The position numbers and the translations under genes are program-made. Below the pieces are notes generated by a model that saw nothing but the letters and a program-made list of their open reading frames with translations, was not told the origin of the DNA and made no database searches. Of a stretch of DNA of 64,000 nt, positions 13,965 through 49,059 are shown piece after piece (the first letter of the stretch is position 1; every line of letters starts with the position of its first letter). The stretch is taken from positions 2,294,001 to 2,358,000 of the forward strand of contig JBLDXI010000013.1 of assembly GCA_047495785.1 (NCBI GenBank). The letters run 5' to 3'. Source of the stretch: Lepidodermella squamata. Lineage: Eukaryota > Animalia > Gastrotricha.

Positions 13965-16098
13965 TTAATAACACGATAATGTTTTTAGTAAAACCAAATA
14001 TAATAACGGAATGGCTGAAGTATTTAGACGAGCTGCTGAATTGCTTTTCTTTGTCTTAATCGTTGATATTACTTTGTCGAATATTGAAAGATCTGCATCA
14101 AGTAGTTGCTTACTGGTTAGAACGATTCGATCTTTTTCCGAAAATCGCGGCGCTTTTTTCATGGCTGAACACCGATCAGCTTGCGATCGAATCTGGTAGA
14201 CATCGGCCATTTTATCTGATATTGTCTCTATGGCGGCGAGGTGGAAAACAGCGCCTCTCATGCATGCGCTGCCGAGTAGATTTTGCGTTTGTAAAAATTT
14301 GTAGCACGAGTATGAGCAGGCAAAAGCCGGATAGCCGAGTTGAGGGTCGTTACAATACGTCATGAGACCGCCTTGAAGCGAGTTCTCCCAACGAACCAAA
14401 TCGCTCTGAAATTTCTTCCACTGACAGCCGTCAACTTCATCTTCATTCATAGAGCAAATATCAAACTACAGGAGCGGAAATTAGAAAGAAATAGAAGAAA
14501 TAACCAGGGCCTAACCTTTCCTAGGTTGTCGAGTAAGAGACTGTTGAGACCCTGCGGTCTTGGATGGACATTTAAGTTGGCGAGACACATTTCATCGGCC
14601 GTGTTTTTCCCGAAATATGTCCATTCGTCACGGTCCACTGATTTGTAGACGCATTCAATTTCAATGTTATCACCCGGTTCGATAGTTGGGCTGTCGGAAC
14701 TCGACCAAAACACCATTTTCGGCTTATCATAGGTAACATCGTCATCAACTGAAAATCCCCCATTTAGGAATTATTTGATTTTTTTTGTAAAAATTACTCA
14801 GTGTGATGACTCGGCCGTTTCGTTTTTTGATAATCAGCCTAGCATGAACGCCCAATCTATGCATATGGAAGAGAACTGAAGTGATGTTGTACATAGGATG
14901 AGGCGATAGTGTTCTTAAACTGCACTGCGTTGTTTGAAAAGTTCGCCCGATCACGCGGGTGAGTTGCCTCGAATTCGGCGGAATCGCAATATCCACCTGG
15001 CCGACCTCAACGGAACCAATATGGTACTGTCGCTTTTTCGCCGTGTAATAAAGCTTTAATCCAGATGAATCTTTCACGTCTTTTGTTAACATTGGATTGT
15101 TGTAGTGTATTTGTAGAATGACCCGACCGTAAGCTCCTTTTCCCATTAAAAAGCCTGTGTCGTTGTTGTAGCATCGATTAGGAGCCTAAAACTTCCTATT
15201 ACAACGAAAATTAATGAATTTTCACGATTTTACCCCAAAAGCCCAGGTGATTGAGCTCGAGTAACATTCTTTCGGGATCAAGGGACATTCGTCTGGCCTT
15301 TTGTAACTTCCTGATTGATTCAAAGCAGATTCCTGGCTAGGGGAGTCGCAAATAAATAGCACCAAGTGATGCACAACTTCGATATTGGAAAGAAGGGGCT
15401 CGAACTAAAAATTGAATAAAAAATTTTAAAAAAATTATTTGTTAATTAATCATACTGCAATGATGTGATAATCTTGATCGTTGGGTACAGCGAATTGTTG
15501 GCACATGTAGAGCGTTTCGCTATCGGCCGGCAATGTGACTTGATCGAACCTTAATTCGAGGCTCTTCACATTAGCCTCTCGAACTGGCGGGCACCAGTCG
15601 TCAACAGTAGCATTTAATAACGCCGCGCATGCCGGAATTTTCGCAAGGAAACCATTTTTCAAAGCGCAGCTGGTCGAATTGAGTGGTTCGCAAATGCCAG
15701 GATGGGACAAGAATCGAGTTGCGGCCTGAACTGGAGTTTTGGCCTCAGGTACCCATGTGCAGTTAGGATCGCCCAACTCTTGCCCGTTTGTTAAACCATC
15801 CCCATCGCTATCTTTCATACACAGCTCTCTGGTAAATTTTCGACCAGCGGCGAGAAAATCTCGGCCGAACGAATTCAAAGGTCCGGAACCTAACTGAGAT
15901 TCGTGCCCAACGCCTAAAGCCATACTAATTTGAAATAATTCGTGTCGATTGATTCGGCAAACCTTTCCAGATCAAGTTATCGCCGCAGGGAGATGGCACA
16001 ATATTGCCATTAGGAATTTCCAATTGAAATTGGGGAAGAGGGGCGACCAATCGATTTGTTATAAATGTTATTAATCCGATGAGAATTTGCCGTGACAT
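13965..16098 (-). CDS. Temptin-domain copper type II ascorbate-dependent monooxygenase, copy A (signal peptide, GPI-like tail)
   Basis: IPNG..VPSPC..W.GVGH..DSDGDGLTNGQELGDPNC..SHPGICEP; Cu ligands VVHHL, LQIHYNN, FHMH, DEMC; hydrophobic C-terminus; six exons join in frame. Confidence 0.85.
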
Positions 16099-16659
16099 GA
16101 AAAGCCTTGAAAGTTGTTGTAATAAGGCGTCACCTCCTCTCTGTTGGTGTAATGGGCCGTATAATTGCAAGCTACGGTAGGAAATTAAAAACAAAAAAGT
16201 GGCAACAAAGCCGTGTAGACATAGCGCAGTCGCAGTAGAAAATGTTATTCAAAAGGCATAATTTCTTCTGGTCTCGTGTAAAAAGGCCGCCTGTTTACCT
16301 AGCGCGCGCGGTAAAAGAGGCGCCCTACTGGTGGCGGTGACTCAGGTGAGTCTCTTGTTTTGCGTGGCGCGCGCGCAAATACCCACGCACACTCACACAG
16401 CGGGAAAAGCGACTTTTCTCCAGGTAATATAGCGTTGTGATTAAAGTTGATATATTTGCATCATTACTACTACCTGTTACCAACAGCGGGTCAAATTTAC
16501 CGGTACACTGAGCTGGTAACATTGCGTGCTATGAAAGCGGAAAATAAAAAAAAAAGGCGTCGTTTTTTTTCGACATTTTTTTATTTGTTCTTCACTGCAT
16601 CACCGGCCTGATATTACAGGAAGGCAGATATTATTTTTTCCTTAATCGATCCAAGAAAA

Positions 16660-19044
16660 TTAAAAGACTACTGGGCGAAAATAGGTTATCGCTATAAGAA
16701 CTGCCGAAACACTCCTGAACTGGCGATTCGATTCCGCGCCCGAGATGACTGATCGAGTTGTTTCGTAATAGTAAGTTGTAGTTGTTGTATCTTCCGGTTC
16801 TTCCGTGGTTGTAGTTGTCGCTCTTCTTCGAGTCGTCGTGATGTCATAATCATAAGGATCCAAAGCTCGAGCCGTTTGTCTACGAGTCGTCCTACTTGGA
16901 GCAAGTGTTATTCCCGGGCTCACGTCGCATTGAGTTGGGGCGGGTCGAGAAGGTTGAGAACTGCACTGCGCCGCATAAGTTTGGATTGCGTACACGTCGG
17001 CAGGGTTTTGAATCACCCACCAGCGAGTTGCCATGTAGAAAACCGAACCGCCACGCTCGGTTATACACGGACTGCCAAGCAAACCGTAATTTCTCAGGTA
17101 ACTGTGAGATCAAATGAATAGGATTAAATTGAGTTCCAGAATCGAGTTGTGACCTTATAGCCACCTTAAATTTTCGACTTGAAAAATTGGTAGCAAATTA
17201 AGAAAATTAAAAAATTAAAAATTAAAAATAATAATGATAAAATAATTAATTAAAACAATTAAAAATTAGTTTTGAATACTAATTAATAAAAATCTTAATT
17301 ACTCGTAGCATTTTTGCGAACAAGGTGGCGCCGGATTTGATCGACAGGTGCAAGCACCCTGAAGGCCCCCGTCATTTGCTGAGTACATTTGTCGAAGAGT
17401 CGCATAGAATTGCTCAAGATCGCACTGGCCTATCACGCCCGAGTTCCGCTCACAGCTATCGGTGTCTCCGATATTGTCCAGCATTTGAAACATTTGATTT
17501 TTCGGACGCGGCGTTATGTCCTAGGTTGATTGACGAAATACACTAAATTTTCTTCCAACCAAAAAAACTCACCATAAAAGCCATGCACATCTCATCTTGA
17601 GTTGACCCGCCAAAGTAGGTCCATTTGTTTCGAGTCGTCGAGTCATACCGGCACTCAATTTCCCAATTATCTCCCGGCTCAACAACTATAGCTTGGGAAA
17701 GGGGCCAAGTGGTGATTGGCGGGCGGTCGTAGGTGACTGGTTTGTCGAGAAGGGTGATCTTTTGACCCGAATTTCCCTTGGTCAGAACAACCTTGCCGTA
17801 GACACCCAATTTATGCGCGTGGAAAATCATAGAAGTGACGTTGTACGAGGCAGCTGGGCTGAAACTCGACCGGCTGCATTGCGTCGACCGGAAACCACGG
17901 CCATAGACGCTGGTTGATTTAGTCTGAGGTGGAATTCGAATATCTTGCTGGCCAATCGCAAACATGGCGTTGTCATTTTTCCGCTGTCGGGGAATGTAGT
18001 AGATCCTGACGCCAGACGAATCACGAATGCCTGTTCTCAGCATCGGGTTGTTGTAGTGAATCTGCAAAATGACTGTTTGGTAGTAGCTTCTGCCGAATGG
18101 TATCCCGATGGAGGAATCGTAGCAGCGACTTCCGTGACCGAAGGCCCAAACAAGAGCAGCAGAACCACAGGCTGTCAAAAAATTGATAACATTGAACGTT
18201 TTAAATTAAATTTCGAACCTGGGGTTAAGGGGCATTCTTTAACGTTTTGATACCCTCCTTCAGTCTTTAGAGCTTCGAAATCAGTGGCAATATCGCAAAC
18301 GTATAGAATTAGGTGGTGAACGAATTCAATGTTGTCAATAATTGGCTCGAACTGAAATTCGGAAAAGGTAACTCTTTACTGTAAGAAAGGGATTAGAAAC
18401 CTTACCGCGATAATCTGGTAGTCCTTATCATGAGGTACAGTTATTTCCTGGCAGAGGTAAACAGTTTCCTGAGGCGAAAGTGGAGCACTGTTGTATCTTA
18501 TCTCCATTGACTTGACATTTGCACCTCTAATACCGGGGCACCAATTGCTGCCGGCTGGATTAATAGGCCCTGAACCCATAGTCATCCCACTGTCAGAGTT
18601 GTCAGAGTTGTCCATACTAGTACCAGTTTTGCCTTGACATGCCGGAAGCCTCGATAGGAATGCGTTATTCGATTGGCATTTCACTGAATTGATTGGTTCG
18701 CAGACACCAGGGTGCGATAGGCTGGTCGATCGAGGCGGACGGGTGCCTGGCTGCCATGTACAGTTCGGGTCACCCAATTCCTCCCCGTTCGACTTGCCGT
18801 CACCATCGGAGTCAATTTGGCAAAGAGCTACTGTCCAAACATTTCCCTGTGCGTTGAAATCTAACCCGAACTGATTCCGCGGCCCGTTACCAATAGATAA
18901 CTCATGCCCAACCCCCGGCCATGTGGATAGGGGATCGCAGGGGTTTGGTACGTTTCGACCATTCGGGATTTTATCCTGAAAAGCCGGGTAGCCGATAGCT
19001 GGCAATAGCACGGCTGATAAAATCGAAAGTCTAATGGCCAGCAT
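16660..19044 (-). CDS. Temptin-domain copper monooxygenase, copy B (Thr-rich stalk, GPI-like tail)
   Basis: Signal peptide, temptin motifs, FVHHL, LQIHYNN, FHAH, QDEMC, Cys-rich domain, then TTTTTEEPEDTTTTT and a hydrophobic end. Confidence 0.85.
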
Positions 19045-19350
19045 CGCGCAAAACTGCTGGTTTCAGTTCGAATAAAGAGTGGTAGAATGAGTAGGTCCTT
19101 CAGTGCTTTTCGGTTAAAGTCGCGCAAAACACCTACATGTTTGAATAACCTGCCTTTTTTTTATAGTCGCCACGCTGTTTGCGAAGTCGCGCGGAGACGC
19201 GACCTAACAAAGTTACCGAATCGCGAAAATCACGCACCGGCACAACACGAACTCAGAAAAACCCGAGTTTTTCTTAATCATGGTTTATTAAATCATCATA
19301 AATAAGGCCAGATGAATGCTGATTGATGTCTTACATCATTAAAGAACCGC

Positions 19351-21271
19351 TTAGAATAACCTGGCCAGACAAGGAATTAGTGCAAAAGATGCAATCAGCA
19401 CAGAGTCTGCGAATCTCAAACTGGCTGAGCTTTTCGCTCTGAAGCATTTTTCACTTGAAGGAGGTGGGCTAGACCGTTTCATGCATTGCGCCATTTGTGA
19501 ATAGGACCGATGAAGAACTTCGGCATCGTCATACCATGGTCTCATACCAATTTGGAAATATTCGTCCCGTGCAAGGCACGGTTCATTCAACAAATCGTAC
19601 TTCTTAAGAGCTTCGTAGCATGCAGATGTGCAACCCTCCGCCGGGTAGACGTCTTCACAGCCACAGGCGCCGATAAGTTCCTTGGTTCCCGCTGAGGCAA
19701 CGGGCGGTACGCCGAATTCTTGCCCGATCTTCTGATGAAAACTCTGATAGAAGCAATCACCATAACCCCAGGCGCCATTCGACGGTGTGCAAGGATTTAT
19801 GTCACCCGTGCTGGCAAGCATGCTGAAAACTGATTCTCGTGGCCTAGGGTAAACTAAAAATAAAAGGACCAGTGTGATATAACGTCCTATCGTCGCTGAT
19901 AAACTTACTATCGATGAAGTAATAACACATCTCATCCGAAGTTTGAGACCCGAAAAAGCTCCACTTATCCTTGTTCAGTGTGTTGAAGCCGCATGTTACG
20001 CTGATTTCATCACCTGGTTCGATGATAACTCGGTTATTACCTGTCCAAATAGCTGTTTTCGGTCTGTCGTAGGTCAAAGCTTCGTCGACAAGAATCATCG
20101 AATAACCCGCCTTCTTCTTGTTTAACACCAAACGGCCGTAGCTTCCCTGTTTATGTATGTGAATCAGAAGGGACAAAAGGTAGTAGTTTTGGCTCGGCTG
20201 AAGAAGGTTTTGAGTGCATTCAGAGGATAAGGTGCTGGTTACTTCGGTGCTGTATGTTTTCGGCGGAATGCGCAGGAACTGGTCTCCGAGGCCAATGAGA
20301 CCCTTCGCAATGGTACGCTTCTTTTTCTGGTAGTAGATTCTCACCCCAGAGCTGTCGACGAAGCCAGATTTTCTTCCATCGTTGTTGTAGTGATGCTGAA
20401 GTACAACTTGTTTGTAATCAGTGTTCATGCCGAAGGGAATGCTGATATCGGCGGGGTAGCATTGACCGGTTATTCCGTAGGCCCACACAATCATCATGGA
20501 ACCACAGATTAATGGAAGCATACGGCATTTTTGAGCGTTCTTCTTCGCTTCCTCAATTTCAGGAATCGCTTTTAAGAAAGTCACAATAGATCAACATGAA
20601 ATTGACTTAATAAGTATTCACTTACGAGGTACCCAAGTGCAGCCGAATACGATCATGTGATGAAAAATCGCGCGATTGTCAATAATCGGTTCCCACGCAA
20701 TGATTTCATACTCATCGTCCGAAGGCATATCAAAAAATTGGCACATGTATTGAGTTTCTTCGTCCGTCAATGCAACTTTATTGTACTTCATCTCCATAGT
20801 TTTAACACCGTCTTCCGCTGTTGAAGGACACCAGGAAGAGGTGGCTGGGGTAGTTTTACCAAGAGCAGCGCACTGAACCAAGAATGTGTTTTTGGTCGTA
20901 CACTTGGGGTCATTAAGTGGCTCGCAGATTCCTGGGTGAGAAAGCTTGCTAGTGTCTGTTACAGCCGGCTGGGCTCCCGTGGTCCAAACGCAGTCTGGAT
21001 CACCAAGCTCTTCACCGTTCGTTTTGCCATCACCATCACTGTCCTGTTTACATAAAGCTTGCGTCCATTTTCTGCCATTGGCATCGAATGCTGCTCCGAA
21101 AGGATTTCGAGGGCCGCCACCCAGACGGTCCTCATGGCCGACACCTACCCATATAGATTTCCCATCATCGCAAGGATCTGGAACGCTTTTCCCATTAGGA
21201 ATATCATCACGAAAGTTCTCGAAACCGAGTGACGACGTAACAAGCAATGCATGCAGTATTAAAAACTTCAT
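19351..21271 (-). CDS. Temptin-domain copper monooxygenase, copy C
   Basis: MKFLILHALLVTSSLG signal; DSDGDGKTNGEELGDP; IFHHM, LQHHY, IHIH, SDEMC; tail SSASLRFADSVLIASFALIPCLARLF. Confidence 0.87.
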
Positions 21272-22020
21272 TATCGGCTATTTTAACGTACTGCTTAATG
21301 CTATCACTCCTTCTTAGTGTCTCATTTATAACCTCCGCTATCACAGCTGGTATCTCTTTTAACCCGACAAAACCACACAAATGATACGACAAGGACTGGG
21401 CGTATTGCAAGTTGAACGCGTGAATAAGGATCGGCCCACTTCGATGGGCGTGGCAAAGTTATCATTTGAAGTTTTTCGAGCTATCCCTGTCGTCGCTGAA
21501 CTATAAAAGATGGAAGATATCTAATCCGGACTTTGCCTAAAACGGACCATTTTGAATGGCTCCACCCCGAAAACGGAATCGCTAAATCGTACTAGTGCCC
21601 AACACCGGACCTAGTGTGGGTTCTTTTTTAGTCCGGCTGAGGCATGAAATGGTGAATTTTATATTTCGAGAAGGATATATGGATTTTTTATTTGGAGAAA
21701 TGTCTGCCTAAAAGACACACCTTGAAATTTGTATATGCTTGATCCTGGATTTTGTTTGGCGCGACCCGAGTCCGGGGTAAGACAACGTTCACTGTATAGG
21801 TAGGTGGCAGCCTTAAGCTGCTAACTTATCTAATGGTTCCAGCTAATTCTGATGTTTATTCAAATGCTCAATTGATATGTCAAATTTAAATCGGAGAAGA
21901 TATGCAATTAAATAAAAATCAGTATGATTTCACGTAAAGTTTCACAGGCTACCTAATTCTTTTATTTATTGATTTAATCCATTAATCTTGGATTAACAGA
22001 TATTGTTTATTTAGTTTTCT

Positions 22021-23968
22021 TTACGGCATTGCAGTAAAAGCAAAGAGGGTTACGAGCAGAACAGATGCGGGTAGGCTCGCCAATGTGGACGAGACACCAC
22101 CTTTCAGCTGAATGTAACACTTCTCGCTGGGCGAAGGTACAGTCTTCAGCTTCTTACATTGTTCGATCTGCGAGTACGACCGGTGAAGCACTTCAGAATC
22201 GTCGAACCACATTCGTAGACCAGACTGGAAGATAACATCACTCTTTAGACATGGCTCTTGCAGTAGATCCAGCTTTTGTAGCGTAGAGTAGCAAGTAGCG
22301 GAACAACTCTCAGCTGGATACTTTTCGTTGCACGCGCATGCATTCATCAGTTCCAGGGAGGTATTTGAAGCTTTCGGTGGTATGTTGTAGTCTAGATTCA
22401 ATTTTTTATGCAGCTTCTCAAAGCTGCAGTCTCCAAAGCCCCATCCGCCAGTGCTAGAACTCTGGGGTGTACAAGCGTCTATATCGGACATGCTTGCCAG
22501 GTTAGTGAAGACGGAGCTTGAAAAAATTCTGGGATAAACTGGTAAGAGGTCGCCGTTTACAAATTGAAAAATAAAAGAAACCGAAGGACTTACTATCGAC
22601 GAAAAAGTAGCACATTTCATCCGATGTTTGCGAGCCAAAGAAACTCCAATTATTTTTGTTCTGGGTATTATACCCACAGGTCACCGTTAATTCATCACCA
22701 GCTTCCAACAAAACCTGATGATTACCAGTCCATTCCGCGGTTTTCGGCCTGTCGTAGGTCAATGCTTCATCGACTAGGATGATAGAATAACCGGCTTTCT
22801 TCTTGTTGAGAATGATTCGAGAATAAGTGCCCTGTTTGTGCATGTGCACCAACAACGAGATAAGATTGTAGTTTTGATTCGGTCTCAACATTTTCGTCGT
22901 GCATTCCGATGACCAAACGCTGGTGATGTCGGTTTGCAAAGTATTCGGCGGTATCCTTAGGTAATTTTCTCCAAGAAAAATGATCCCCTTGGCGATAGGC
23001 CTTTGCTTCTTCTGGTAGTAGATTTTAACACCGGAATTGTCGATGTAACCAGGTTTCCTAGCGTCATTATTATAGTGATGCTGAAGAACAACTTGAGGGA
23101 ATCCACTTCGCTTTCCAAACGGAATGCTAAGATCGGTAGGATAACATTGGCCATTTATTCCGTACGACCAAACAATCATGGGCGATCCGCAAGTGAACAA
23201 GGTCATTCGACACTTGATCGCTGTTTTCTTCGCCGCCTCAATTACATCAGGCATAGCTAGAAGGAGATTTAATAGGAAGTGCTATCTTAAAAACTGCTGG
23301 CAAAACATACGGGGCAGAGATGACGGGCATCCAAAGACAATCATGTGATGGAAAATTGCTCGGTTATCGATTATGGGCTCCCATGCGATGATTTCATACT
23401 CATCATCAGATGGCAGATCAAACAGTTGGCACATGTATTGAGTTTCATCGGTTGTTAGCGCAACGTTTTTGTACTGCAAGACGATTGACTGCACGCCGGC
23501 GTCCGAGGTCGCTGGACACCATTTAGAAGTCGCTGGGGTTGTTTTACCCAGAGCAGCGCATTGAGTGAGGAAGGTGTTCTTCGGCATGCATTTCGGATCG
23601 TCCAGTGGTTCACATACCCCAGGATGAGATAGTTCTTTCGGGTTAGTGATGGCTGGCTGTGCTCCCTTGACCCAGACACAGTTTGGATCACCAAGCTCCT
23701 GGCCGTTAGTTTTACCATCCCCGTCACTGTCTTGTTTGCAAAGATCAGTGGTCCATTTCTTTCCACTGGCGTAGAAAGCAGATCCGAAAGAGTTGCGAGG
23801 ACCGCCACCCCGAGAATCTTCATGGCCTACACCGGACCACATTGTCTGACCATTATCACAAGGATTCGGAACGTTGTTGCCATTGGGAATGTCATCTTTA
23901 AAATTTTCAAAAGCTTTGGCCTCTTTGACGACCAAAACTAAGGCGGTAAGAAGAAATATGGATTTCAT
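22021..23968 (-). CDS. Temptin-domain copper monooxygenase, copy D (close paralog of C)
   Basis: MKSIFLLTALVLVV signal; IFHHM, LQHHY, VHMH, SDEMC; GPI-like tail; same intron pattern as copy C. Confidence 0.87.
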
Positions 23969-24249
23969 TCTGTGGTTTGTTTCAGCTATACCGTTAAGAT
24001 TACCGCTATACGGCCGAGTTTTATAGCCCTTATCATCTATTTTAATCGCACCGCGTTTGATACCGATATTTTCTTGCCAATATAAATGCATACTCGTGAA
24101 TCAGAATGGGGTCATTATGACGTGAATCACTGTTCTTCCTCGATAATGGCCGCGCCCAAATTTAGTATCATTTCAGACACAAATTGTGAAGAGTTGATCC
24201 TTTTTATTCAAAAATCCTGTGCACTTATTTTGAAGCAATGTGACTCAGT

Positions 24250-26135
24250 CTACATCAGAGAAGCCAGGCTCAAATTAGGGGCAACCATTTTAGCAAGCTC
24301 CTTGATATCGCGCAAAATAGACATAAGGAGTGAATCCGCAGATCGGCTTGGTGGCTGAATACTTCCATCACACATTTGGCCTTCCGGGGGCGGCGATGTA
24401 AGCTTGACACACTGTTCCAGTTGGCCTCTAATCGAATATTGAGTCGGCCAGTCACCAGGGGCGATACCTAAAAGATGGATAATGGATCCCTGTAGGCAGT
24501 TGGTGTGGTTCAAAAAGCCAGCTCGGTTCAAGAAATTGTAACACCTGCTGGAGCAGGCAGGCGATGGGTAACCAGACGAGCAGTAACAGTCCCTCTCGAA
24601 ACTTCCTAAATTATTCACCTTAGTGTAGTTCAAGAGGTTTCGGAACGCGAGTCTCGAGCAATTTTTCAACGTCATAACTTCGCGAGCTGTGCACTGATCG
24701 AATTCGCCGATGTCGGTGGATCCCGCGCCTAGAATGTTATTAACCCATGGTGATATCTCAAAGATGGCCAAGCACATTTCATCCTGAGTGCTCTCTCCGA
24801 ATGTTGTGTACTTGGTTCTTCCCATTGTGTTATAGCGACATTCGATAGACAACGCATCTCCACCTTCAATTTCTACAGTGTTATTGCCGTGATATTGAAC
24901 CAAAGCTGGCATGTCGTATTCGATAGCCCTGTCGAGCAGAGTGATAACTTGACCGGACTTTTTCTTCAAAATCAGCTTGCCGTAGTTGCCAAGCTTATGC
25001 ATGTGGAACAGCATGGATTGCAAATTGTAGGTATTGTTACCGAAAGTTTTAGCACTGCAGCTGCCTTTCACTCCATCACCCTTAACAACGGTCAATTCAG
25101 TCTTTGGTGGCAATATAACGTCCATGTTTCCGACTACGAAACTGCCAATCAGATTTTTGCGTTCCTTCTTCTGATAATACATGACGATTCCAGACGAGTC
25201 GACGTAGTAGTCCTTCATCTCAGGATTGTTGTAGTGAAGCTGGAGAATGGTTTTGTTGTAGTAGTTCTTGCCGAAGGGGATAGCGCGATCCTCATCATAA
25301 CAACGAGGCGGAACTCCGAATGCCCAGACAACAGAGTAACTCGTGCAGGCCGGGGCCATTGGGCAGACAACAGGATCTTTGTACCAGTCCTTGCCCATCG
25401 CCTTGTAACGCATTAGCTCATCGGGGCGGGAACATGTGTACGAAACCAAGTGATGCATGATCTCGACGTTGTCAATAAAAGGTTCCCACTAATAAAAAGA
25501 CAACAAATGCATAACTCTTCAATCTTCAGAAGATAACTTACAGCAATGATTTCATAGTCTTGATCGTCAGGGAAAGTGAACTCCTGACACATGTAGGATG
25601 TATCATTCGCTGGAACCTTTGTCTGCTTGAATCGGAATACCAGCTTTTGAACACCAGGTCGGTTAATAGCCGGGCACCACTCTGTCTTATTGAAATACTC
25701 CGAGCAGTGGTCACTCGACTCCAAAAAGGCATTCTTCTCCTTGCATGCCGGTGTGTCAAGAGGTTCACAAACACCGGGATGGCTGAGCTTGGCGTAATTG
25801 GTGACACTAGGTGCTGCCCCGGGTGTCCAAACACAACCTGGATCTCCAAGCTCCTCACCATTAGTGCGACCATCTCCGTCACTGTCGAGCTTGCAAAGCG
25901 ATTTCGTCCATGCCTTGCCATTCTTCAGGAAATCTCGTCCAAACAGGTTGAAGGGGCCAGCTCCAAACTGGCTTTGATGGCCAACGCCCAGCCATGTCTC
26001 ATTGCGGTTGCAAGGGTGGGGTACTCGTAACCCATTGGGTATTTGTTCAGTAAAAAACTTGTAAGATACTGCAAGATTAACACAGGCCGCGAACACCGCG
26101 ACCTTCAGCAAATTTCTGAGTAAATTACTCTTCAT
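24250..26135 (-). CDS. Temptin-domain copper monooxygenase, copy E (one intron, no hydrophobic tail, many N-X-S/T sites)
   Basis: MKSNLL...AVFAACVNLAVS signal; temptin motifs; IMHHL, LQLHYNN, FHMH, QDEMC; C-terminus LLMSILRDIKELAKMVAPNLSLASLM contains charged residues. Confidence 0.87.
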
Positions 26136-26880
26136 TTCAGACACGTATTCGTTTACTCTGATGATCCATCGAGGATTTACCTGGCTTTTAAGCTCGTTTT
26201 TTTTCTTGCTTGTTTTTTTGTCTTGTCGTGTGCGGATCAAAAAGTTTTTTCTACGCATTCTTCTTGCCCTGGCGATGAACTCGTGCAAGCCGGCTTGAAT
26301 CGCTTTCACGGACTTGGAAGGTAAAACAACCAAGAAGCTTAGAAAACTGCTAAATTCAGTATTCAATCCTCTACACGCGGCCGTGGGCTGCGTTAATAGG
26401 TGTTATTAGCCAGAAACTTCTCGAAGGCCCTTGTCTGTTATGAAAATTTGGCCGTATAAAGAAGACGCAAGGCAGAGCCAATTTTTAATTATTGATACTC
26501 CAAGTAAGACATTACATTTAATAGGTCACCAAATATACCTAATAGAATGTATCCGATGCGTCAGTATAATATGACTTGTTGGCTACTTCCAATTGCTTTT
26601 AATGGTTTTGTGTTCTCTGAATGACACTGAACACTGAGATTCATCAACTGGATTGAATGGTTATAATATCTATACGAGACATACACGGCAGTGCATGTGA
26701 ATCACACGTGAAATTATCTTATCTCCCGCCATTTTTATCAGGCGCTCGCGCTTGAAATGACAGAGGAAGAGGAAACGTATGTCAAAAAAATATTAGACAA
26801 TTTGTCAAACCGGTTAAGGCTCGTATTAGGTCGTGGTTAGTTACAGCCCGTGAACTTCTACCGAAACTAGGACGAACAAA

Positions 26881-28182
26881 ATGCCTCGAGTTCTAATTAT
26901 TGGCGCCGGAGTTTCTGGTCTGCTCACCTTATACACCTTGAAACGCGAGTCAACCAGCCACGAAATCACTTTCAAATGTTACGAAAGGGGTACGCAACTC
27001 GGAGGTGATTGGTTATTCGACGAACGCGTTGGAAACGATGAATACGGCTTGCCTATTCACACGAGTATGTACCGGGGCATGCGGACTAATGCTCCGAAAG
27101 ACATGATGAACCTGCACCCAGACTTCAAATGGCCGAGTGATGTTCCGACTTTCCCAACCCGCGAAATGGTTCTCGACTACATCAACAGCTTCGCAAGCAA
27201 ATTTGGCCTTGAACGATACGTATCTTACAACACACATGTCGAAAATGTTGATTTTGATGATAACAGCCAGACCTTCGTCGTTACATCGAAAGATCTCCCC
27301 AGCGGAGAGATTAGCGTTGAATCATTTGACTACGTGGTTATTTGTGTTGGTCGTCATTCGAAGCCATACATTCCGAAAAATTGCGATTTGACTAAATTTA
27401 CTGGGCAAGTGATGCATTATCATGATCTGAAAGACCCGATGAATATTGCTGGTAAGAAAGTTCTGGTAGTTGGAGCAGCTTTCGGTGCCATAGACATGTG
27501 CCTTCATTTGCGACAATACGCCGCTTCCTTATCAGTTTCTACGAATGGACTAGGCAAACGGATACCATTTTTCATTACTCAGCTCGGTTTGAAAAACTAT
27601 GCATCTATTTCAAGAGGAGACGGTAAAACCGTTGAATTTGCGAGTGGCGAAACTCTGGAAGATGTCGACGTTATCTTATTCGCAACTGGCTTCACCCAAG
27701 AGCAACCTTTAGCCAGTAAGATTCAGCTAGACCTTGATGGTTATTCAAAATTGGTATTCCCCCTCTACAAACACGTTGTACATCCTAAATGTCCGAGGCT
27801 TTTATTTGTTGGTAAAAGTCGAATCACGTTTTTCCTCTACGCAATTCAAGCGGAATTTGTTTCCCGAGTTATAACCGGTGAGATTAAACTGCCGAGTTCT
27901 GAGGAAATGCTTGCGAGTATCGAGGCTTTCAAACAGAAATACGACGGGCCGCATGTTATTGAGCACAACTTTTTCCTGCGCCAGGCGAGGATGGGCTATG
28001 CTCTAGGGGTCGAAATGGCTCAGGCAATGGGCATCGAAGGACCGCCAAGTTACAGCCTAGCTTTGTTTGATGCTTATGTTGACATGATGGGCAAGCATTT
28101 GATTGATTATCACAACTTTACGGTTAAGGTAATACGTGAGCCTGGTAGCGATGTTGAAAAGGTGGAATTTGTGAAACATTGA
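26881..28182 (+). CDS. Flavin-containing monooxygenase (class B FMO), intronless, soluble
   Basis: GAGVSG FAD motif, GGDW...SMYRGMRTNAPK, FTGQVMHYHDL (FMO fingerprint variant), VVGAAFGA, FATG; no C-terminal TM. Confidence 0.92.
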   Translation: MPRVLIIGAGVSGLLTLYTLKRESTSHEITFKCYERGTQLGGDWLFDERVGNDEYGLPIHTSMYRGMRTNAPKDMMNLHPDFKWPSDVPTFPTREMVLDYINSFASKFGLERYVSYNTHVENVDFDDNSQTFVVTSKDLPSGEISVESFDYVVICVGRHSKPYIPKNCDLTKFTGQVMHYHDLKDPMNIAGKKVLVVGAAFGAIDMCLHLRQYAASLSVSTNGLGKRIPFFITQLGLKNYASISRGDGKTVEFASGETLEDVDVILFATGFTQEQPLASKIQLDLDGYSKLVFPLYKHVVHPKCPRLLFVGKSRITFFLYAIQAEFVSRVITGEIKLPSSEEMLASIEAFKQKYDGPHVIEHNFFLRQARMGYALGVEMAQAMGIEGPPSYSLALFDAYVDMMGKHLIDYHNFTVKVIREPGSDVEKVEFVKH

Positions 28183-28381
28183 TTATCCATAATTGTGAGT
28201 AAATATCATTAATCGATTAATTGGAATTTGCCTGCGGGGACAATAAATGAGTACTTCCGTGATGTTCATAAGCTTTTCAGGGAGCCTTTTGTAAACATAA
28301 AAACCGGAAGCAGTGATTATTAGTGCATTTGGAATAGCCAATTGTCCGCTTTTGCAAAATTAGTCTTTATCAACCTTCAGG

Positions 28382-29652
28382 ATGACTATCATTGCTTTTG
28401 TGTTCATCCTATTCGCTTTGAAAATCAGGATCCATGCTGCAGAGATATGCGCCGAAGAAGAGATGTGCAGTTATTTAGTCAGCAATTGTCGCTATCTATC
28501 CAGTCCAAAATCCCGTCCTGTTGTCAACCAAACTCAGTCAGTTCAAGTCACGTTAGAATTAAACCTAAGACGCCTATTGGAAATGAACGATCTTCAGCAA
28601 AAGTGATCAAAGGAATCCAATTCATGTTTGAAAGTTTTATGCATTTTATGTTAAGAATGTCTCTTCAAGCTGTGGTGGGCGTGTATTGGCAACTACCAGA
28701 ATGCGGGCGATGGGGCGTGAACTCCGGGAACAACTTCAGCAACTTGTCAAGCGATGCTCTCTCTGTGGCGTCATGTTCATTTTCGACAAGTGAAATATGG
28801 CATCCTGAAATTTCTGTTTGCAACGCCATATCAGAAGTTTCGACAGCTATTAACTCGTACTCGGGCGACAAATTGACTCTTTATGCGAATGGGTGGGTGC
28901 GACAATTCGCGCCTGGTAGATACGATGTCGTGTGTAACTTCAATTTCAGGGTAGGAATAGTATATATAGCTTACGATATCATACATTTACCATTTCACCT
29001 ATCAAAGGCATTTCCTTTCGATAAACAATCTTGCAATATTGAGTTATGTTCCCCTGCGACGCCTTATGAACTGGCTTTCAATACTACAAGAGTAATTTTC
29101 CTTGAGAACTACCTCAAAGACACAGAATTCATCTCAGATGCCGACGTGTGGGAGCGTATTAACAACGAAGTCGATGCGCCAAGAGCCGTTTATAGCATCG
29201 CTAGATTCTGGTTCCACTTCAAACGCCGGCCGCAACACTTTGTTCTGACTATCTTCATTCCTCTAGGCTTGCTAATGGGGCTACAGTTTGCAGCTCTAAT
29301 TTTGCCACCAACTATGCCGGATAGAGCTGGATATTCAATTACTACAGTACTGGCCTATCAAGTCTCGGAGCAGTTATTCACAGCTAACATTCCTCAAACC
29401 TCACAACCCGTTTATCTATTCTTTTACGTTCAAGCTAACATGGCAATAGGAGTTTTATTGACTATCTACGTCCTGCTCTCATGCACTCTAGCCAGGATGG
29501 ATAGGTTCAAAAAAGCTGGAAAACTATGTGCAAGCATTTCAAACATTCGAATGATGGACTTGATTTTCGGAACCTTCTGTTTTCTGTTGTTAGCATTTCT
29601 TAATATTTTATTCTATAGGCTCATTGCTAATTACGAGAATGTAGAAAATTAA
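28382..29652 (+). CDS. Divergent Cys-loop ligand-gated ion channel subunit (introns 28603-28655, 28951-29007)
   Basis: Signal peptide, RPV.N, IWHPEI. Removing the in-frame 57-bp intron gives the Cys-loop CNFNFRAFPFDKQSC (C-x13-C). FKRRP precedes four TM helices with M2 DRAGYSITTVLA. Confidence 0.9.
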
Positions 29653-29681
29653 TGTTAATCACAACATTTGACTGAAAAAAG

Positions 29682-31612
29682 TTAAAATAGCGAAAGCGAA
29701 GCAAGCAAAGCGATTGTTGGAATAAAATGGAAGCCCGGCATAATCGAGGTGGCCGAATTTCGGAAACCGCATGTTTCGCTCGGCAAGGGTTCAGAACCCA
29801 GCTTCTGGCACACGTCCATTTGTGATTGAGCTCGAATCAATATTTCTGAGTCGTCGTAAAATGTTTGCATTCCCATCATAAAAACGTTGTCACTAGCGAC
29901 GCAAGGATCGCCAAATAAGTTAAACTTTTTCATATTGTTGTAGCATGCCGAAGAGCAGCCTTTGGCAGGATAGGATTCCATGCATCCACAGTCCTGCACG
30001 AGTTTGGCGAGGTCCTCGGGCACTGGTTTTCCAGGCTTTGCCCCAAATTTGCTGTAGAAATCGTTGAAGGTGCACCCACGCGCACCCCATGGTTCAGTTG
30101 GCAGCCCCATTTGTTCGCAGTAATCCAAGTCGCCCAAACTCGCCGGCATCATGTAGTTCAAATTATACGGCCTTGGGTAGACTATCAGACGAATCAAAGT
30201 TTGAGAATAATACGCTGGCGAAAATTAAATGCTTACCATCGATAAAATAGTAACACATCTCATCAGCTGTTTGTGAGCCAAAGAAGGACCAGGTATTTTT
30301 GTTCTCCGTATTGTAGCCGCAAGTGAAGGTCAGCTCATCCCCTGCTTCGAGGATAATTTGATGATCTCCAGTCCAAAGCGCGGTTTTCGGCTTATCATAA
30401 GTGATCGCTTCATCAACGAGAACTATCGAATAACCTGCCTTTTTCTTGTTCAACACCAAACGGCCGAAGCTTCCCTGTTTATGAATGTGCATCAGAAGAG
30501 ACACCATGCGTAAAGGCTGGTTGGGCCTAAGCAATTGTCGCGTGCACTGGGATGACATTTTATTTGTCACGCGGTAGTTCTGCATATTGGGTGGGATTTT
30601 CAGCAACATGTCGCCAAAGGCTATCAAACCCTTGTTTTGAGGCCGTTTCTTCTTCTGATAGTAAAATCTGATGCCAGAAGAATCAACGTACCCGGGCTTG
30701 CGTTGGTCGTTGTTGTAGTGGTGCTGCAATGTCATAGTGGTGTAGTGACCTTTGCCGAAGGGTGCCCCAAATTCGGCAGAATAACACTGACCTGCGATTC
30801 CATAGGCCCAAACGATAATCATCGATGGGCAATATTCAGGAACCATTCGACACTTTTTCGGCTCTTTGAACGGCAGTTCGCTTGGATTTTTAAACGAATA
30901 TTCACAGCCATATAAAATCATATGGTGCAGTATTTCGCGATTATCAATTATCGGTTCCCACTAAGAATTACAAATTGAATACTCACTAATTTTAAGGATA
31001 ATTCTTTCAAGAATGACATACCGCAATGATTTCGTATTCTTCATCGGATGGAATGTCAAAAATTTGGCAGATGTATTGCGTTTCTTCGTCCGAAAGCTTG
31101 GCCTTGTCAAACGTGAAAATTTTCTGATATACTCCCGGCTTGTTAAGATCAGGGCAATTCGCCAAAGGAGCAGGCGTTGTCTTTCCTAAAGCTGCACAGC
31201 TTTGCAGAAACGTGTTTTTCTCCAGGCATTGCGGTGAATCTATTGGCTCGCAGATTCCAGGGTGGCTGATCAGTTTGGGGTCAGTTATTGCTGGGGTTGA
31301 ACCTGTAGTCCAAACGCAATTGGGATCCCCCAGCTCCTGGCCGTTCGTCTTGCCATCGCCATCGCTGTCCAGTTTGCAAAAGTCAGTGGTCCAAACTTTT
31401 CCAGCTTTGAAAAAGTCGGAGCCAAATGGATTCCTGGGACCACCCCCACGAGGATCCTGATGCCCTACGCCCTGCCAAATTGAGGAAGGTTCGCAAGGGT
31501 CGGGAACGTTGTCCCCATTCGGTATAGCTGTCTGAAGTGATTTGAATGCGGCAGAGAACTGCAACACGGGAATTGCCACACATAGAACTGAAAACAGAAT
31601 TTTGGAGAGCAT
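29682..31612 (-). CDS. Temptin-domain copper monooxygenase, copy F
   Basis: Signal peptide, temptin motifs, ILHHM, LQHHY, MHIH, ADEMC, tail NSATSIMPGFHFIPTIALLASLSLF. Confidence 0.87.
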
Positions 31613-32140
31613 GTTGATTTCTGTGGTATATGCTGCTTCTTTTACTTTATCTTCTCTCCTTCCTTATATAGCTTTTATCTCCAGCTTTTAATGTCTGAAT
31701 AAGAAAAAAGAACAGCTTTGTAATTGCAAGGCTCATTTATCTCCACAGTATCAGGTGATACTAACCTGTGTTGTGGTATGCTAAAAGGCGTGTTGCTAGC
31801 GAATAAATCATATTATCAAAGTTGAAAGACGTGGGGCGTGTTTGAGCATCTGTTGCAAGCAATATTCCCGCTCTATTAAGATAGGAAACATTCTAAACAC
31901 CTACACCATGCACTACTGGTTTTTCATGATTCATGAACGAGAATATCTCATTTCAGACCTTCTGCGGTCCGTGACTGATCATCTCTATGGTTGGGTAAAG
32001 CGTCACGATGCATAGACTAGACTGCCAATCCACTCTTTTCGCATGACATTGAAGAATATCAAAGCGGTCCAGGCTAAGTACAAGTGAAGTTTTTTGAATA
32101 CCAGAACTCCAGATCCAACCAGTCGTTTTTCTGCGGAATT

Positions 32141-32186
32141 CATAGAGAACAGAAGTACATTCTGTAATGTACTTCTGTTCTCTATG
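32141..32186. mobile_element. 46-bp minimal MITE (two 21-bp TIRs, 8-bp target-site duplication)
   Basis: CATAGAGAACAGAAGTACATT-ctgt-AATGTACTTCTGTTCTCTATG, flanked by GCGGAATT at 32133-32140 and 32187-32194. Confidence 0.75.
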
Positions 32187-32198
32187 GCGGAATTGAAT

Positions 32199-32507
32199 CG
32201 AATCGAAAGCTGAAGAATCGCAAATCCACGTTTAATGGTGGATCTTTGATTAACCATTTGGACTGCACAGAAACTTTGAAGATTGCTAACCAGTAGACGA
32301 GCCAATGTTCTTCATTAGTCGCATCTAGCTGATTCCGGCCTTGGGACCGGTTCCAAGCAGAGGCTTGGAAGGTCTTTACAATGCATTGCCCTCAGGAAGA
32401 ATGAATCAGCTAGATGCTAGCAATCTTCAAAGTTTCTGTGCAGTCCAAATGGTTGATCAAAGATCCACCATTAAACGTGGATTTGTGATTCTTCAACTTT
32501 CCATTCG
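32199..32507. repeat. Long imperfect inverted repeat (foldback)
   Basis: 32199-32288 pairs with ~32417-32507 with few mismatches; 32321-32335 pairs with 32403-32417. Confidence 0.8.
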
Positions 32508-33230
32508 GTCCAGGCTAGGTTTAATACCACGATAAAACTGTATCGAGGCTAAATTTAAAACGTTGAAAATCGGGAAAAGACTTGCCTGTGCAGAATACAA
32601 AGCTATTTAAAAGCCTCCCTAGCCTCTTCCTGACATTGTACCTGGCAACACGTCGAATCTACGTCCATATGGTGAGTTTTGTTGAGTTCTCGGAATCGCC
32701 GTAAGTTCGGACCCGTCGAGTTGAAGCAGATTCCTCCATTTCCTAGATATTCGGCAACCAACGATGCTATGACGCTCAACTCGAAGTAGTCCGGATCAAT
32801 GTTGAACAGTACCTATGAATGAATCAACTTGCCTCGAGATAGTGGCCTTCACAAGAATAGCAGGAAATTTGAATTTCCTGCGCGACTTTTTGCTTTTGGA
32901 CATTGTTCCTGCAAACCGGAAGCAAGTTGTATTGGTACTTCCGCGCATGGAAATTTCCGCACGTGGTTTTTCCGCGGAGACCTCGCGATAGATTCCAAGA
33001 CATTGAATATAATTCTTAAGATTGAATATACTTGCGCTAATGATCCCTGTGCGGAAATATACACGAGCGGATCTTGCGGCGCAGAAGTACCACAAAATCA
33101 CTTGAGAAAACTCCAAAGATAGGATATATGGCATTTAAATACATTTTTCAAAAATTGTGTCGGGAAAAGAGTTTTACGCAAGCGTTTGTATCAAATTGTC
33201 ACATTTTGCTGGGAGCTCCAGCTAAAAGGG

Positions 33231-35670
33231 TTATGAAGGCTGGAACATTTGATGAATCAAAGCGATTGCTAGGATAACCAAGAAGGCCGGCTTTATATCA
33301 TTTGCGGAATTCAGCGCATAGCAAGTTTGGCTCGGCAACGGTTCCGAAGAAAGTTTTTGGCACGCGGCCATTTGTGATTGAGCGCGTATTACTTCTTCCG
33401 AGTCATCGTAAAACACCTGCATTCCTAACACAAAAACGCTGTCGCTGGCCACGCATGGGTCGCCAAACAGCTGGTACTTCTTCATCGCGTTGTAGCATGT
33501 CGATGAGCAGCCTTTGGCAGGGTACGTTTCCTTACAACCACAACTTTGCAGCAGTGCATCGAGGGTCGCGGGCGCTGGCTTGCCAAACATCGCCCCGAAT
33601 CGGGCGAAGAAACCAATGAAATTGCACCCACGAACGATCCATGGCTGTCCTGGATCGGGAAACTTTTCGCAGTAATCAATGTTACCCAGACTAGTCGAAA
33701 AAATGTAGTTCTGGCCTAGCGGTCTCGGATAAACTGTAAAATGAAATGTAGTATAAATCAATTAAAAATCCGATTTATACTGACCATCAATCAAAAAGTA
33801 GCACATTTCATCGGAAGTTTTGGATCCGAAGAAAGTCCAGTCCTTCTTGTTCTCGGTATTGAAACCACAAGTGAGAGACAGTTCATCGCCAGGCTCGATG
33901 ATTATTTGATGGTCACCAGTCCATTGCGCAGTTTTTGGCTTGTCATACGTTATCGCTTCATCCATGAGAATAATCGAATAACCAGCCCTCTTTTTGCGCA
34001 AAACAAACCGGCCGTAGCTTCCCTGCTTGTGGATATGCATTAACAGCGAAACCATGTGATATGGCTGGTCAGGTACAAGAAATTTTCGGGTGCATTGCGA
34101 CGTCATTCCGCTGGTGACACGATAACTCTGCATATTCGGCGGGATTTTCAGCAACATGTCGCCGAAAGCTAACAAGCCCTTATTTTGCGGCCGTTTCTTT
34201 TTCTGGTAGCAAAACCTGATGCCAGAGGAATCGACCAGTCCTGCTTTACGTTGGTCATTCGTATAGTGATGCTGCATAGTCATTGTTGAGTAGTGTCCTT
34301 TGCCGAAGGGAGCCCCAAATTCGGTAGAATAACATTGACCCTCGATGCCATAGGCCCACACAATAATCATGGATGGGCAGTATTCAGGAACAATACGACA
34401 CGTCTTCGGCTCTTTGAACGGTAGGTCGCTTGGATTTTGAAACGGATATTCGCAGGCATATAAACTCATGTGATGCAGGATTTCTCGATTGTCGATGATC
34501 GGCTCCCACTGTGAAGATCAACATTTGTTTAAATATTGTTTTGCATTCGACGGCTAATTTCGGATTCACACGTCGGAACCTTTGCACACTTCAAAGTTGC
34601 CCTGCTATAATCGGCTAAAATTTGGAATTTACGATGAAAAACGGCCTTGAAACTGCTGCTTTTTATCATTTCTTTTTCAAAGCGAACTTTGAGGACTAGA
34701 AGGGCATGCCGCTTACTCTAACCCTAGGTCTTAACGTAAGTGAGTAGGATGAACATTTCCGTAAGACGGAAGTTTTGCAAAAAACTGTTGCTAATACACT
34801 TGAATTCATATTCATCGAGATCTCTGGCAGTATTCAGCCAATTTCCACCAATACTAAATCCGCAATTTTGTGAATTTTGGTGCGCTACAGTAGCAAAGTT
34901 GACTTATGGGGTCTCCCAAGCTTAACTGGCTGCTCATTAGGATTTCTAATTACGTTTCAATCTTAAGAAGACTCTATTTCAAGTTATATGTCCACCGAGT
35001 CAGCGGCTCGCCGCAAAACAAGTACCAACTCGAGCGGGCATTGCAAGAATCCCTGATCTATGAGCTGATTGGGCATCTTTCCATACTTACCGCAATAATT
35101 TCGTACTCTTCATCGGATGGCACATCGAAAATCTGGCACATGTATTGCGTTTCCTGATCTGTCAACTTGACTTTGTCAAAAGTGAAACTCTGCTGATAAA
35201 TCCCAGGTTCGTTTAGACCTGGGCAACCTGCAAGTGGATTAGGCGTCGTCTTCCCTAGAGCTGCACAGCTTTGCAGGAACGTGTTTTTCTCCAGGCATTG
35301 CGGTGAATCTATTGGCTCACAGATTCCAGGGTGACTGATCAGTTTGGGGTCAGTTATTGCTGGGGTTGAACCAGTAGTCCAAACGCAATTGGGATCCCCC
35401 AGCTCCTGGCCGTTCGTCTTGCCATCGCCATCGCTGTCCAGTTTGCAAAAGTCAGTGGTCCAAACTTTTCCAGCTTTGAAAAAGTCAGAGCCAAACAGGT
35501 TCCTGGGACCACCCCCACGAGGATCCTCGTGTCCTACACCCTGCCAGATCGAGGCAGGTTCGCATGGATCGGGAACATTGTCTCCATTTGGAATAGCTGC
35601 TTATAGAGATTTGAATGCGGCAGAGAACTGCAAGAAACAATAGAGCAATAAATGGTAATTTTGAGAGCAT
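33231..35670 (-). pseudogene. Temptin-domain copper monooxygenase copy G, probable recent pseudogene
   Basis: The ATG at 35670 is out of frame with the temptin domain, and an in-frame TAA at 35603-35601 replaces Gln of copy F (FKSL*AAIPNG vs FKSLQTAIPNG). Downstream exons are open with all Cu ligands. Confidence 0.75.
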
Positions 35671-36177
35671 TCTGCGATGTGGGTCTTCCCCCTTGTCCTC
35701 AGCTTATATAGTATCATAGAAACAGACTTATCTGAAACGTTTGTTTGAATAGTAACTCACATCTGCAACTATGGCGTTTTATCTTTATCTTTCATGTCAT
35801 GTGATTAGGGACTTCAGTGCAGGAAGTATCTCAGCATGAATAACCTTTTTGCTACGATTTATTATCTCCCCGGACAACAGGAGATTACATTCTATAGCTA
35901 GCCAGAGAGAAATGAAATCCTCCTCCCAGATTTGAAACCGTGAGCGAGCTTGGCGAGTTTCTACATATTTTTGCATATTTTACAGATTGTTTTCCTATTT
36001 CTCTCACAATTAACGAAAGAGCAGTCTTTGATACTGGCCATTTAATCGAACAAATTGATTACGCATAGATGAAAACGTAAATATTTGAAGAATGAAGAAA
36101 CATGCAATTTGCAATGGCTTCAGTCCACACCGCAGTAGAACATTTTTTAATCACAAAATTTGAATAATCAAAATGAG

Positions 36178-36460
36178 TTAAAGTAGCGAAGCAAGCAAAG
36201 CAAAACGAAGCAATTGTTGGAATAAAAAGGAAGGCCTGCATCATCGAGGTGGCCGAATTTCGGAAACCACATGTTTCGCTCGGCAAAGGTTCAGAACCCA
36301 GCTTCTGGCACACATTCACTTGGGATTGAGCCCGAATTAATATTTCCGAGTCGTCGTAGAATGGCTGCATTCCCATCATGAAAACATTGTTGCTAAGCGA
36401 CGCAGGGATCACCAAATAAGTTGAACTTTTTCATATTGTTGTAGCACTTCGATGAACACC
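36178..36460 (-). pseudogene. Truncated remnant of the last exon of a copy-F-like monooxygenase
   Basis: Near-identical to ~29682-29960 (FYDDSEILIRAQSQ..CQKLGSEPLPSETCGFRNSATS), with a 1-nt insertion near 36395 and no upstream exons. Confidence 0.85.
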
Positions 36461-36979
36461 CGTTAACGCCCGGACAATGTTAAAGAAGCGAGGCTTTTCA
36501 TCATTTTTTATTTCCTAAGTTGGAGCTGATACAGAAATATATTAGATTAGTTCATCATCCGCTTTGAAGTAAACGTTAATCAATAACGTCGATAACTGAA
36601 AAATATTTAATAGGATAAAACAAGAACCGGTCTGTTTGAATTGAAAATTAAAACAAAAGAATGCCAGCATTAGAATTTGTTTTTAAGGTATTACGCAAGA
36701 TATTTTAAGAAGCGGAATTTTTTTGAAGATTTTTTTCAGAAAAATAACCGGATTTTCCTGAGTATATGGTCAGCCATATTTAAAGCAAATGAATACTATA
36801 GTTATTAGGAAGATCAAGACCTGCTTTTTCCTCTAAACTAATCCTGGTAGATCAATACCAGTTGAATTCTTTCAAAGAATGTATGTAAGTGATAGAAAAT
36901 ATTGCAAAATAGAGTGAGACTGCTTTCAAAGCAGCTTTCAGCTTTCATCGAAATCGGCTCGCGAGACCTGCTCGATTTT

Positions 36980-47514: not shown

Positions 47515-49059
<1,545 letters not shown>

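Follow-up and report, generated by a model that had tools for sequence, protein, structure and literature searches.

The best-described relatives of the proteins considered here are the copper type II monooxygenases DBH, TBH, MOXD1 and MOXD2, which have a two-domain core with six copper ligands, follow the secretory route and carry an N-terminal DOMON beta-sandwich, and PHM, which consists of the bare core. To our knowledge, amines and glycine-extended peptides are the only established substrate classes of animal PHM/DBH-type enzymes, and MOXD1 and MOXD2 are still orphan enzymes. MOXD2 is described as membrane-bound (PMC4125168). Temptin of Aplysia and Biomphalaria is a small free secreted protein with a PF24784 domain. 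It is regarded as a pheromone whose DSDxD motif binds calcium, and the free protein is cited as a water-borne attractant in both genera (PMC10075465). Here, we describe a 64,000-nucleotide window of the gastrotrich Lepidodermella squamata (contig JBLDXI010000013.1, positions 2,294,001 to 2,358,000) that harbors a tandem array of genes combining the two systems, in which a temptin domain with the same DSDxD-type loop forms the N-terminal module of an enzyme of about 600 amino acids. The array occupies 13965-36464 on the minus strand and comprises seven co-oriented full loci (copies A to G) and one 3' remnant (R), as located by tblastn with exons of copies C and E against the window and by six-frame open reading frames (ORFs). 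These loci add new members, expanded in tandem, to a copper monooxygenase clade that is catalogued but functionally uncharacterised. It is likely that they represent paralogues of a conserved animal branch of the copper type II monooxygenases in which a disulfide-rich temptin domain stands in for DOMON, and that their products are probably active surface hydroxylases.

The main departure from DBH, TBH, MOXD1 and MOXD2 lies at the N terminus. Temptin_C (PF24784) was matched above its curated cut-off in the tested window copies, with E values from 1.6e-25 to 3.8e-37, the latter in copy C. Pfam, database and folding searches were all run on single exons, and joined gene models were used only for alignment, for ratios of nonsynonymous to synonymous substitution (dN/dS) and for the tree. 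In copy D, taken as representative, the temptin domain lies at 23606-23908 on the minus strand and its calcium-loop motif reads DSDGDGKTNGQELGDP; the loop, of the form DSDGDGxTNGxELGDP, is nearly invariant in an alignment of 58 temptin sequences. DOMON (PF03351) had no Pfam match in any window exon, nor in 57 relatives that combine temptin with the core. The temptin region of copy C was modelled with AlphaFold2 from the 58-sequence alignment; the model reached a mean predicted local distance difference test score (pLDDT) of 91.9 and a predicted template modeling score (pTM) of 0.86, and is composed of loops and short helices with almost no beta strands. When this model was compared with the PDB, Foldseek returned nothing at E <= 10 and VIA-align nothing at Z >= 2 among 48,161 representative chains, a structure bank that includes DOMON structures. 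The lack of a DOMON domain, claimed in a preliminary description made from the sequence alone, is thus supported by the Pfam result and by a confident, nearly strandless model without a PDB counterpart, and the N-terminal domain is best assigned to temptin, not DOMON, on both sequence and predicted fold. Two histidines, located in the GVGH and SHPG segments (H29 and H95 of copy C), are also nearly invariant in the 58 temptin domains and could form a structural or metal site.

Three public sequencing runs match this DNA, of which two behave as RNA and one as DNA. RNA-derived contigs skip four minus-strand GT..AG introns of about 55 nucleotides, located at 20569-20625 in copy C, at 23257-23310 and 22539-22593 in copy D and at 25489-25541 in copy E, and both introns of copy D were seen in contigs of two runs. 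The poly(A) site of copy E is marked by a contig ending in a poly(T) run at 24190, and the intergenic segment 21495-21892 is uncovered in one RNA-like run, with the DNA run covering everything. Because RNA-derived contigs skip these introns, end in poly(T) and leave this gap, copies C, D and E are genuine, spliced and transcribed genes. These data also bear on the view that the fusion is an annotation artefact joining a temptin gene to an adjacent monooxygenase gene, as might be suspected from some Mya arenaria entries in which the region is split into short "TEMPT-like" and "MOXD1-like" proteins. In copies C and D, however, the signal peptide, the temptin domain and the catalytic HH motif are all encoded in a single open exon, and therefore each is one gene and not two neighbors. 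The RNA-derived contigs cross the introns that follow this exon, and the same domain order recurs in 57 independent cluster representatives, so that we give an artefact almost no weight.

The genuine fusion continues with a catalytic core. Cu2_monooxygen (PF01082), which is split by the first intron, and Cu2_monoox_C (PF03712) scored above the curated cut-offs in the tested copies, with 39.5 bits (exon 1) and 34.3 bits (exon 2) in copy C for PF01082 (cut-off 30) and 46.8-58.9 bits on the tested exons for PF03712 (cut-off 23). The best-scoring solved structure was that of PHM (1PHM/1OPM, E 4e-12), and in the HMMER alignment copy E matched all six rat PHM ligands, namely H107/H108, H172, H242/H244 and M314. 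In every one of the seven copies these columns spell HHHHHM, so that the three-histidine CuH site and the His-His-Met CuM site are kept throughout the array, as the preliminary description had stated for the HH, H, HxH and Met ligands. Paralogue alignment also agreed with the motif subtypes quoted there: LQIHYNNP is found in copies A and B, LQLHYNNP in E, LQHHYNND in C, D and F and MQHHYTND in G, and the HxH motif is HMH in A, D and E, HAH in B and HIH in C, F and G.

In contrast to the ligands, the residues expected to bind a peptide differ from PHM. R240, N316 and Y318 of PHM are the residues that hold the peptidyl-glycine. R240 and N316 are both Leu in copy E in the pairwise HMMER alignment; the N316 column is Tyr in copies C, D, F and G in the paralogue alignment, and Y318 falls just past the end of the HMMER alignment for copy E, where the residue would be Ile by position. 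As R240 and N316 are replaced, a glycine-extended peptide would be an improbable substrate, and the substrate of these enzymes is probably of another kind.

The C-terminal part of the proteins also sets them apart. The last ~170 residues of the window copies matched no Pfam family; they contain a Cys-rich domain, located at 22099-22536 on the minus strand in copy D as the representative. When iterated on the fetched proteins, a hidden Markov model (HMM) of this domain converged on 82 proteins, 55 with a detected temptin domain and 27 in which no N-terminal domain was detected, and it matched none of about 80 DOMON-bearing proteins in the fetched set. By this measure, the Cys-rich tail appears to be limited to the temptin clade. 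The AlphaFold2 model of the copy D tail, based on a 76-sequence alignment, is a five-helix disulfide-rich bundle (pLDDT 86.9) without a significant match in the PDB (best Foldseek E 1.4, best VIA-align Z 3.0). It is unlike the C-terminal domain of human DBH (4ZEL), as the alignment stops at DBH residue 469 and no fold match was found.

A hydrophobic signal-like segment opens all intact copies, and the C termini of copies A, B, C, D, F and G are hydrophobic with small residues just ahead of them, resembling glycosylphosphatidylinositol (GPI) signals. On the Kyte-Doolittle scale, which reports hydrophobicity only, a 12-residue C-terminal window scored 2.0-3.0 in these six of the seven copies and 1.4 in copy E, whose C terminus is amphipathic and charged. 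The order of signal peptide, temptin domain, catalytic core, Cys-rich domain and tail that had been read from the sequence is borne out, with a hydrophobic tail in six copies but not convincingly in copy E. Among relatives, a hydrophobic C-terminal tail is present in 29 of 44 full-length proteins and all six ligands are kept in 43 of 55, with six truncated and a few in which ligands are clearly lost. The three-part layout with its tail therefore characterises the family as a whole and is not peculiar to this genome. GPI attachment at the cell surface, diverged substrate pockets and copper-dependent activity of the array proteins are inferences.

A word-based search with the long exon of copy E gave a single close relative, the other matches being MOXD1 proteins with DOMON at 26-29% identity, and a feature search of the ESM Atlas gave generic copper-monooxygenase clusters only. 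An exhaustive HMMER search over 1.84 billion cluster representatives retrieved 1524 proteins at E <= 0.001. Among the best 150 of these 1524 representatives, HMMs built from the window copies placed a temptin domain directly before the core in 57, and Pfam found Temptin_C in 55 of the 57 and DOMON in none. A custom DOMON model marked a set of proteins that does not overlap with the temptin set, and all eight proteins of the other clade that were checked with Pfam, which come from chytrids, green algae, Trichoplax and Priapulus, carry DOMON.

The nearest relatives of the window copies are metagenome proteins. Named members come from the molluscs Lymnaea, Littorina, Mercenaria, Babylonia, Mya, Liolophura, Batillaria and Mizuhopecten, the annelid Owenia and the sponges Sycon and Oscarella, and bear automatic database names such as "Temptin", "MOXD1 homolog 1-like", "tyramine beta-hydroxylase-like" and "DBH-like monooxygenase protein 2". 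We highlight four proteins with the same order of temptin and the N- and C-terminal copper monooxygenase domains that fall in the same clade. Three of them, Owenia fusiformis A0A8S4PHA4 ("Temptin"), Littorina saxatilis XP_070205614 ("MOXD1 homolog 1-like") and Mya arenaria XP_052789490 ("dopamine beta-hydroxylase-like"), also showed the Cys-rich tail, whereas the iterated tail model detected none in Sycon ciliatum XP_065180137 ("DBH-like monooxygenase protein 2"). Over the core, identity between the catalogued temptin-domain monooxygenases and the window copies is only 26-35%, and the window copies differ from these proteins in forming a subclade of their own with metagenome proteins, in their tandem expansion and in a more divergent tail. 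The expectation that similar fusions exist in other invertebrates was correct, at least for these eight molluscs, one annelid and two sponges; that they would be unannotated was not, since the proteins are catalogued under automatic names. The novelty of the fusion had likewise been overstated, as relatives are already in public databases and Pfam holds a model of the temptin domain.

Literature searches for temptin, alone or together with DBH, MOXD1 or copper, found no description of a temptin-monooxygenase fusion or its activity in a coverage that mostly excludes subscription journals, in agreement with the earlier statement that no functional characterisation is known. "Temptin" and "DBH-like" genes are instead listed separately among mantle, shell-formation or infection-response genes (PMC5685644, PMC11464482, PMC9210306, PMC8696127).

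A maximum-likelihood tree of the catalytic core (136 rows, 279 columns) was calculated by quick search with support from the Shimodaira-Hasegawa-like approximate likelihood ratio test (SH-aLRT). On one side of the tree lie 54 DOMON-clade rows, fish MOXD1 among them, and on the other 81 temptin-clade rows that comprise all window copies; the split has 95-99% SH-aLRT. The copies are thus not nested in a TBH/MOXD1-type clade, as far as a tree that includes fish MOXD1 but no characterised DBH or TBH can tell. Within the temptin clade, the window copies fall in a group of 11 with 100% support that also contains four metagenome proteins. Copy A pairs with one of the metagenome proteins from another organism, P0188, and not with its neighbors in the array; therefore, at least part of the array is older than the split from the organism of P0188.

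This placement speaks against the array encoding ordinary amine beta-hydroxylases of the TBH/DBH type that make octopamine or noradrenaline. The array proteins share the catalytic core and ligands with such enzymes, and several relatives are named "tyramine beta-hydroxylase-like" or "dopamine beta-hydroxylase-like" in databases. However, such names are automatic, and the array genes are devoid of DOMON and lie outside the DOMON-bearing clade. Copy E is about equally distant from human DBH (45 bits) and PHM (49 bits) but scores 100-330 bits against temptin-clade proteins, and at least seven surface-tailed paralogues are ill-suited to the role of one neuronal vesicle enzyme. We consider amine beta-hydroxylases of this type very improbable.

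The age of the array is relevant to whether its products are enzymes at all. Amino acid identity between paralogues ranges from 36 to 78%, and synonymous divergence (dS) is saturated in 20 of 21 pairs, leaving dN/dS estimable only for copies F and G (dS 1.05, dN/dS 0.127). This sole measurable pair is under purifying selection. The duplications that formed the array are old, and copy G was damaged late compared with its divergence from copy F. An alternative in which the proteins are mainly non-catalytic, serving as surface adhesion or signaling proteins or as precursors that release a temptin-type pheromone, would fit the attractant role cited for free temptin in Aplysia and Biomphalaria (PMC10075465) and the loss of copper ligands in some family members elsewhere. 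Nevertheless, all seven copies keep the six ligands despite an age that has saturated dS, and inspection of the paralogue alignment by eye gave no evident dibasic cleavage site separating temptin from the core. A mainly non-catalytic role is therefore improbable, although less so than the amine hydroxylases.

For enzymatically active surface proteins, the following mechanism can be proposed. Signal peptides would bring the proteins into the secretory pathway, after which six of the seven are probably anchored by GPI on the outer cell surface, with copy E probably a soluble or peripherally bound protein. C-H hydroxylation of an extracellular substrate would then draw on two copper ions, O2 and a reductant from outside, by analogy ascorbate. 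The most likely role of the temptin domain is docking or recognition that depends on calcium. The array itself would have arisen by tandem duplications long ago and subsequent divergence of the copies.

The nature of the substrate allows a more specific version, in which the catalytic proteins act on a protein or matrix component, for example of a cuticle, egg envelope or shell-like matrix, and temptin anchors the enzyme there. Bivalve temptin and DBH-like genes are mantle-specific or linked to shell formation, and temptin marks copper exposure in mussel larvae (PMC9210306, PMC11464482, PMC8696127); the predicted surface attachment and the putative calcium-binding module would also fit. However, none of these three papers shows the genes to be fusion proteins, this animal may have no comparable matrix, and the window says nothing on the substrate, so that we regard a matrix substrate as rather unlikely. 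A broader proposal is that the temptin enzymes form an ancient extracellular class common to sponges and bilaterians that acts on a new kind of substrate, such as a matrix protein or a secreted signal, with temptin as a module that docks a substrate or partner in a calcium-dependent way or perhaps, in view of its two nearly invariant histidines, binds a metal, and that takes the role of DOMON. This is possible but tentative; if true, free temptin pheromones would be relatives of an enzyme module.

Regardless of the substrate, the array belongs to a third large PHM/DBH-type clade that is old, widespread, mostly ligand-retaining and without a described function. The clade is marked by temptin in place of DOMON, a C-terminal domain of its own and, in most members, a hydrophobic tail of the GPI-signal type. 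Many of the "temptin" or "DBH-like" genes in mollusc expression studies may be these enzymes. The array offers several intact, expressed paralogues with short introns that would be convenient to clone.

Several observations weigh against this reading and should be considered together. The ligands are lost in the relatives P0049, P0129, P0177 and P0185, and therefore the family includes non-catalytic members. The temptin protein P0068 adjoins the DOMON clade in the tree, which was a quick one with SH-aLRT support only and had no characterised DBH, TBH or PHM among its rows. The argument on the substrate draws on two positions in one pairwise HMMER alignment. Finally, the RNA confirmation covers copies C, D and E, and the models of A, B, F and G rest on prediction.

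For the gene models of copies A, B, F and G and for intron 2 of copy C, all frame-keeping GT/GC..AG pairs were listed per junction. A canonical intron of 47-61 nucleotides was found at the position expected by homology at every predicted junction, with the exception of introns of 201 nucleotides in copy B and 582 nucleotides in copy G (intron 1). Guanine-cytosine content is about 44% throughout the window, and the DNA is eukaryotic, with very short introns. The eight co-oriented loci had been counted as six intact, one damaged and one remnant, and this count is retained, as the frames of copies A to F are open once introns are removed and G and R are disrupted.

All loci are given on the minus strand. 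Copy A (13965-16098) encodes 628 amino acids in six predicted exons (16098-15963, 15913-15456, 15404-15234, 15185-14798, 14748-14516 and 14465-13965) separated by five canonical GT..AG introns of 48-51 nucleotides. Once joined, these exons give a protein colinear with P0188 (52% identity over 579 amino acids), and four of the five junctions are seamless. At the remaining one, intron 3 at amino acid 384, P0188 has extra residues resembling a read-through intron. P0188, the metagenome protein closest to copy A, is one unbroken ORF of 650 amino acids with about 20 added residues at ~380-400; the insert resembles an intron that a gene caller of the prokaryote type has translated in frame, and P0188 seems to be without the other four introns of copy A. 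Copy B (16660-19044) encodes 676 amino acids in five predicted exons (19044-18406, 18351-18219, 18171-17573, 17520-17303 and 17101-16660). Past the 201-nucleotide intron, the last of its four, a Thr-rich stalk precedes the hydrophobic tail, and the stop at 16660 lies beyond an earlier apparent end.

Copy C (19351-21271) encodes 602 amino acids in three exons (21271-20626, 20568-19909 and 19853-19351), with intron 2 predicted by homology to copy D. Copy D (22021-23968) encodes 612 amino acids in three exons (23968-23311, 23256-22594 and 22538-22021), and its reading frame was checked and is uninterrupted. The frame is also uninterrupted in copy E (24250-26135), which encodes 610 amino acids in two exons (26135-25542 and 25488-24250). 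Copy F (29682-31612) encodes 604 amino acids in three predicted exons (31612-31022, 30960-30237 and 30181-29682). Copy G (33231-35670; exons 35600-35091, 34508-33785 and 33733-33231) is damaged. Alignment with the 5' end of copy F showed an 11-nucleotide deletion just past the ATG at 35670, in the signal-peptide region, and TAA is read at 35603-35601 where F reads CAG; the remaining frame is open. A hidden intron that would rescue copy G was rejected by eye, as the sole nearby GT..AG pair would give an intron of about 30 nucleotides, below any in the array. Intron 1 of copy G (34509-35090) is 582 nucleotides long compared with 53-64 nucleotides at the same position in paralogues. The remnant R (36203-36464) is a frameshifted partial copy of the last exon of copy F, with 89% DNA identity to the 3' end of F and with indels.

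In copies C and D the first intron follows ...HHMIVFGC, about 20 codons further downstream than in the other five copies (A, B, E, F and G), where it follows ...EIIA, as compared between 20569-20625 (C) and 23257-23310 (D) and the introns at 25489-25541 (E) and 30961-31021 (F). This shift within the array is best explained by intron sliding or by a loss and a gain. Among the contigs from the sequencing runs, a joint described as "goes back 2596" was rejected as a structural variant, because it reflects a copy C contig partly mapping onto the similar exon of copy D. Between 22327 and 26128, many single bases differ from the window in the RNA-like runs but not in the DNA run; these are probably strain differences, the runs being from other studies.

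Two plus-strand sequences are embedded between copies E and F. The first is an intact gene at 26881-28182 resembling flavin-containing monooxygenases (PF00743, E 4e-44), with metagenome proteins at 42% identity as its closest matches, followed by insect senecionine N-oxygenase-like enzymes at about 32%. The second is an ORF at 28342-29652 resembling Cys-loop receptors, with a weak match to the ligand-binding domain (PF02931, E 2.4e-07). The flanks of the array, at 3117-7312, 46129-48600, 53129-54055 and 58178-58864, contain ordinary animal genes, including RGS-like and RhoGEF exons, an ENPP-type phosphodiesterase, an enolase, a WD40 protein and a GH18 chitinase-like exon.

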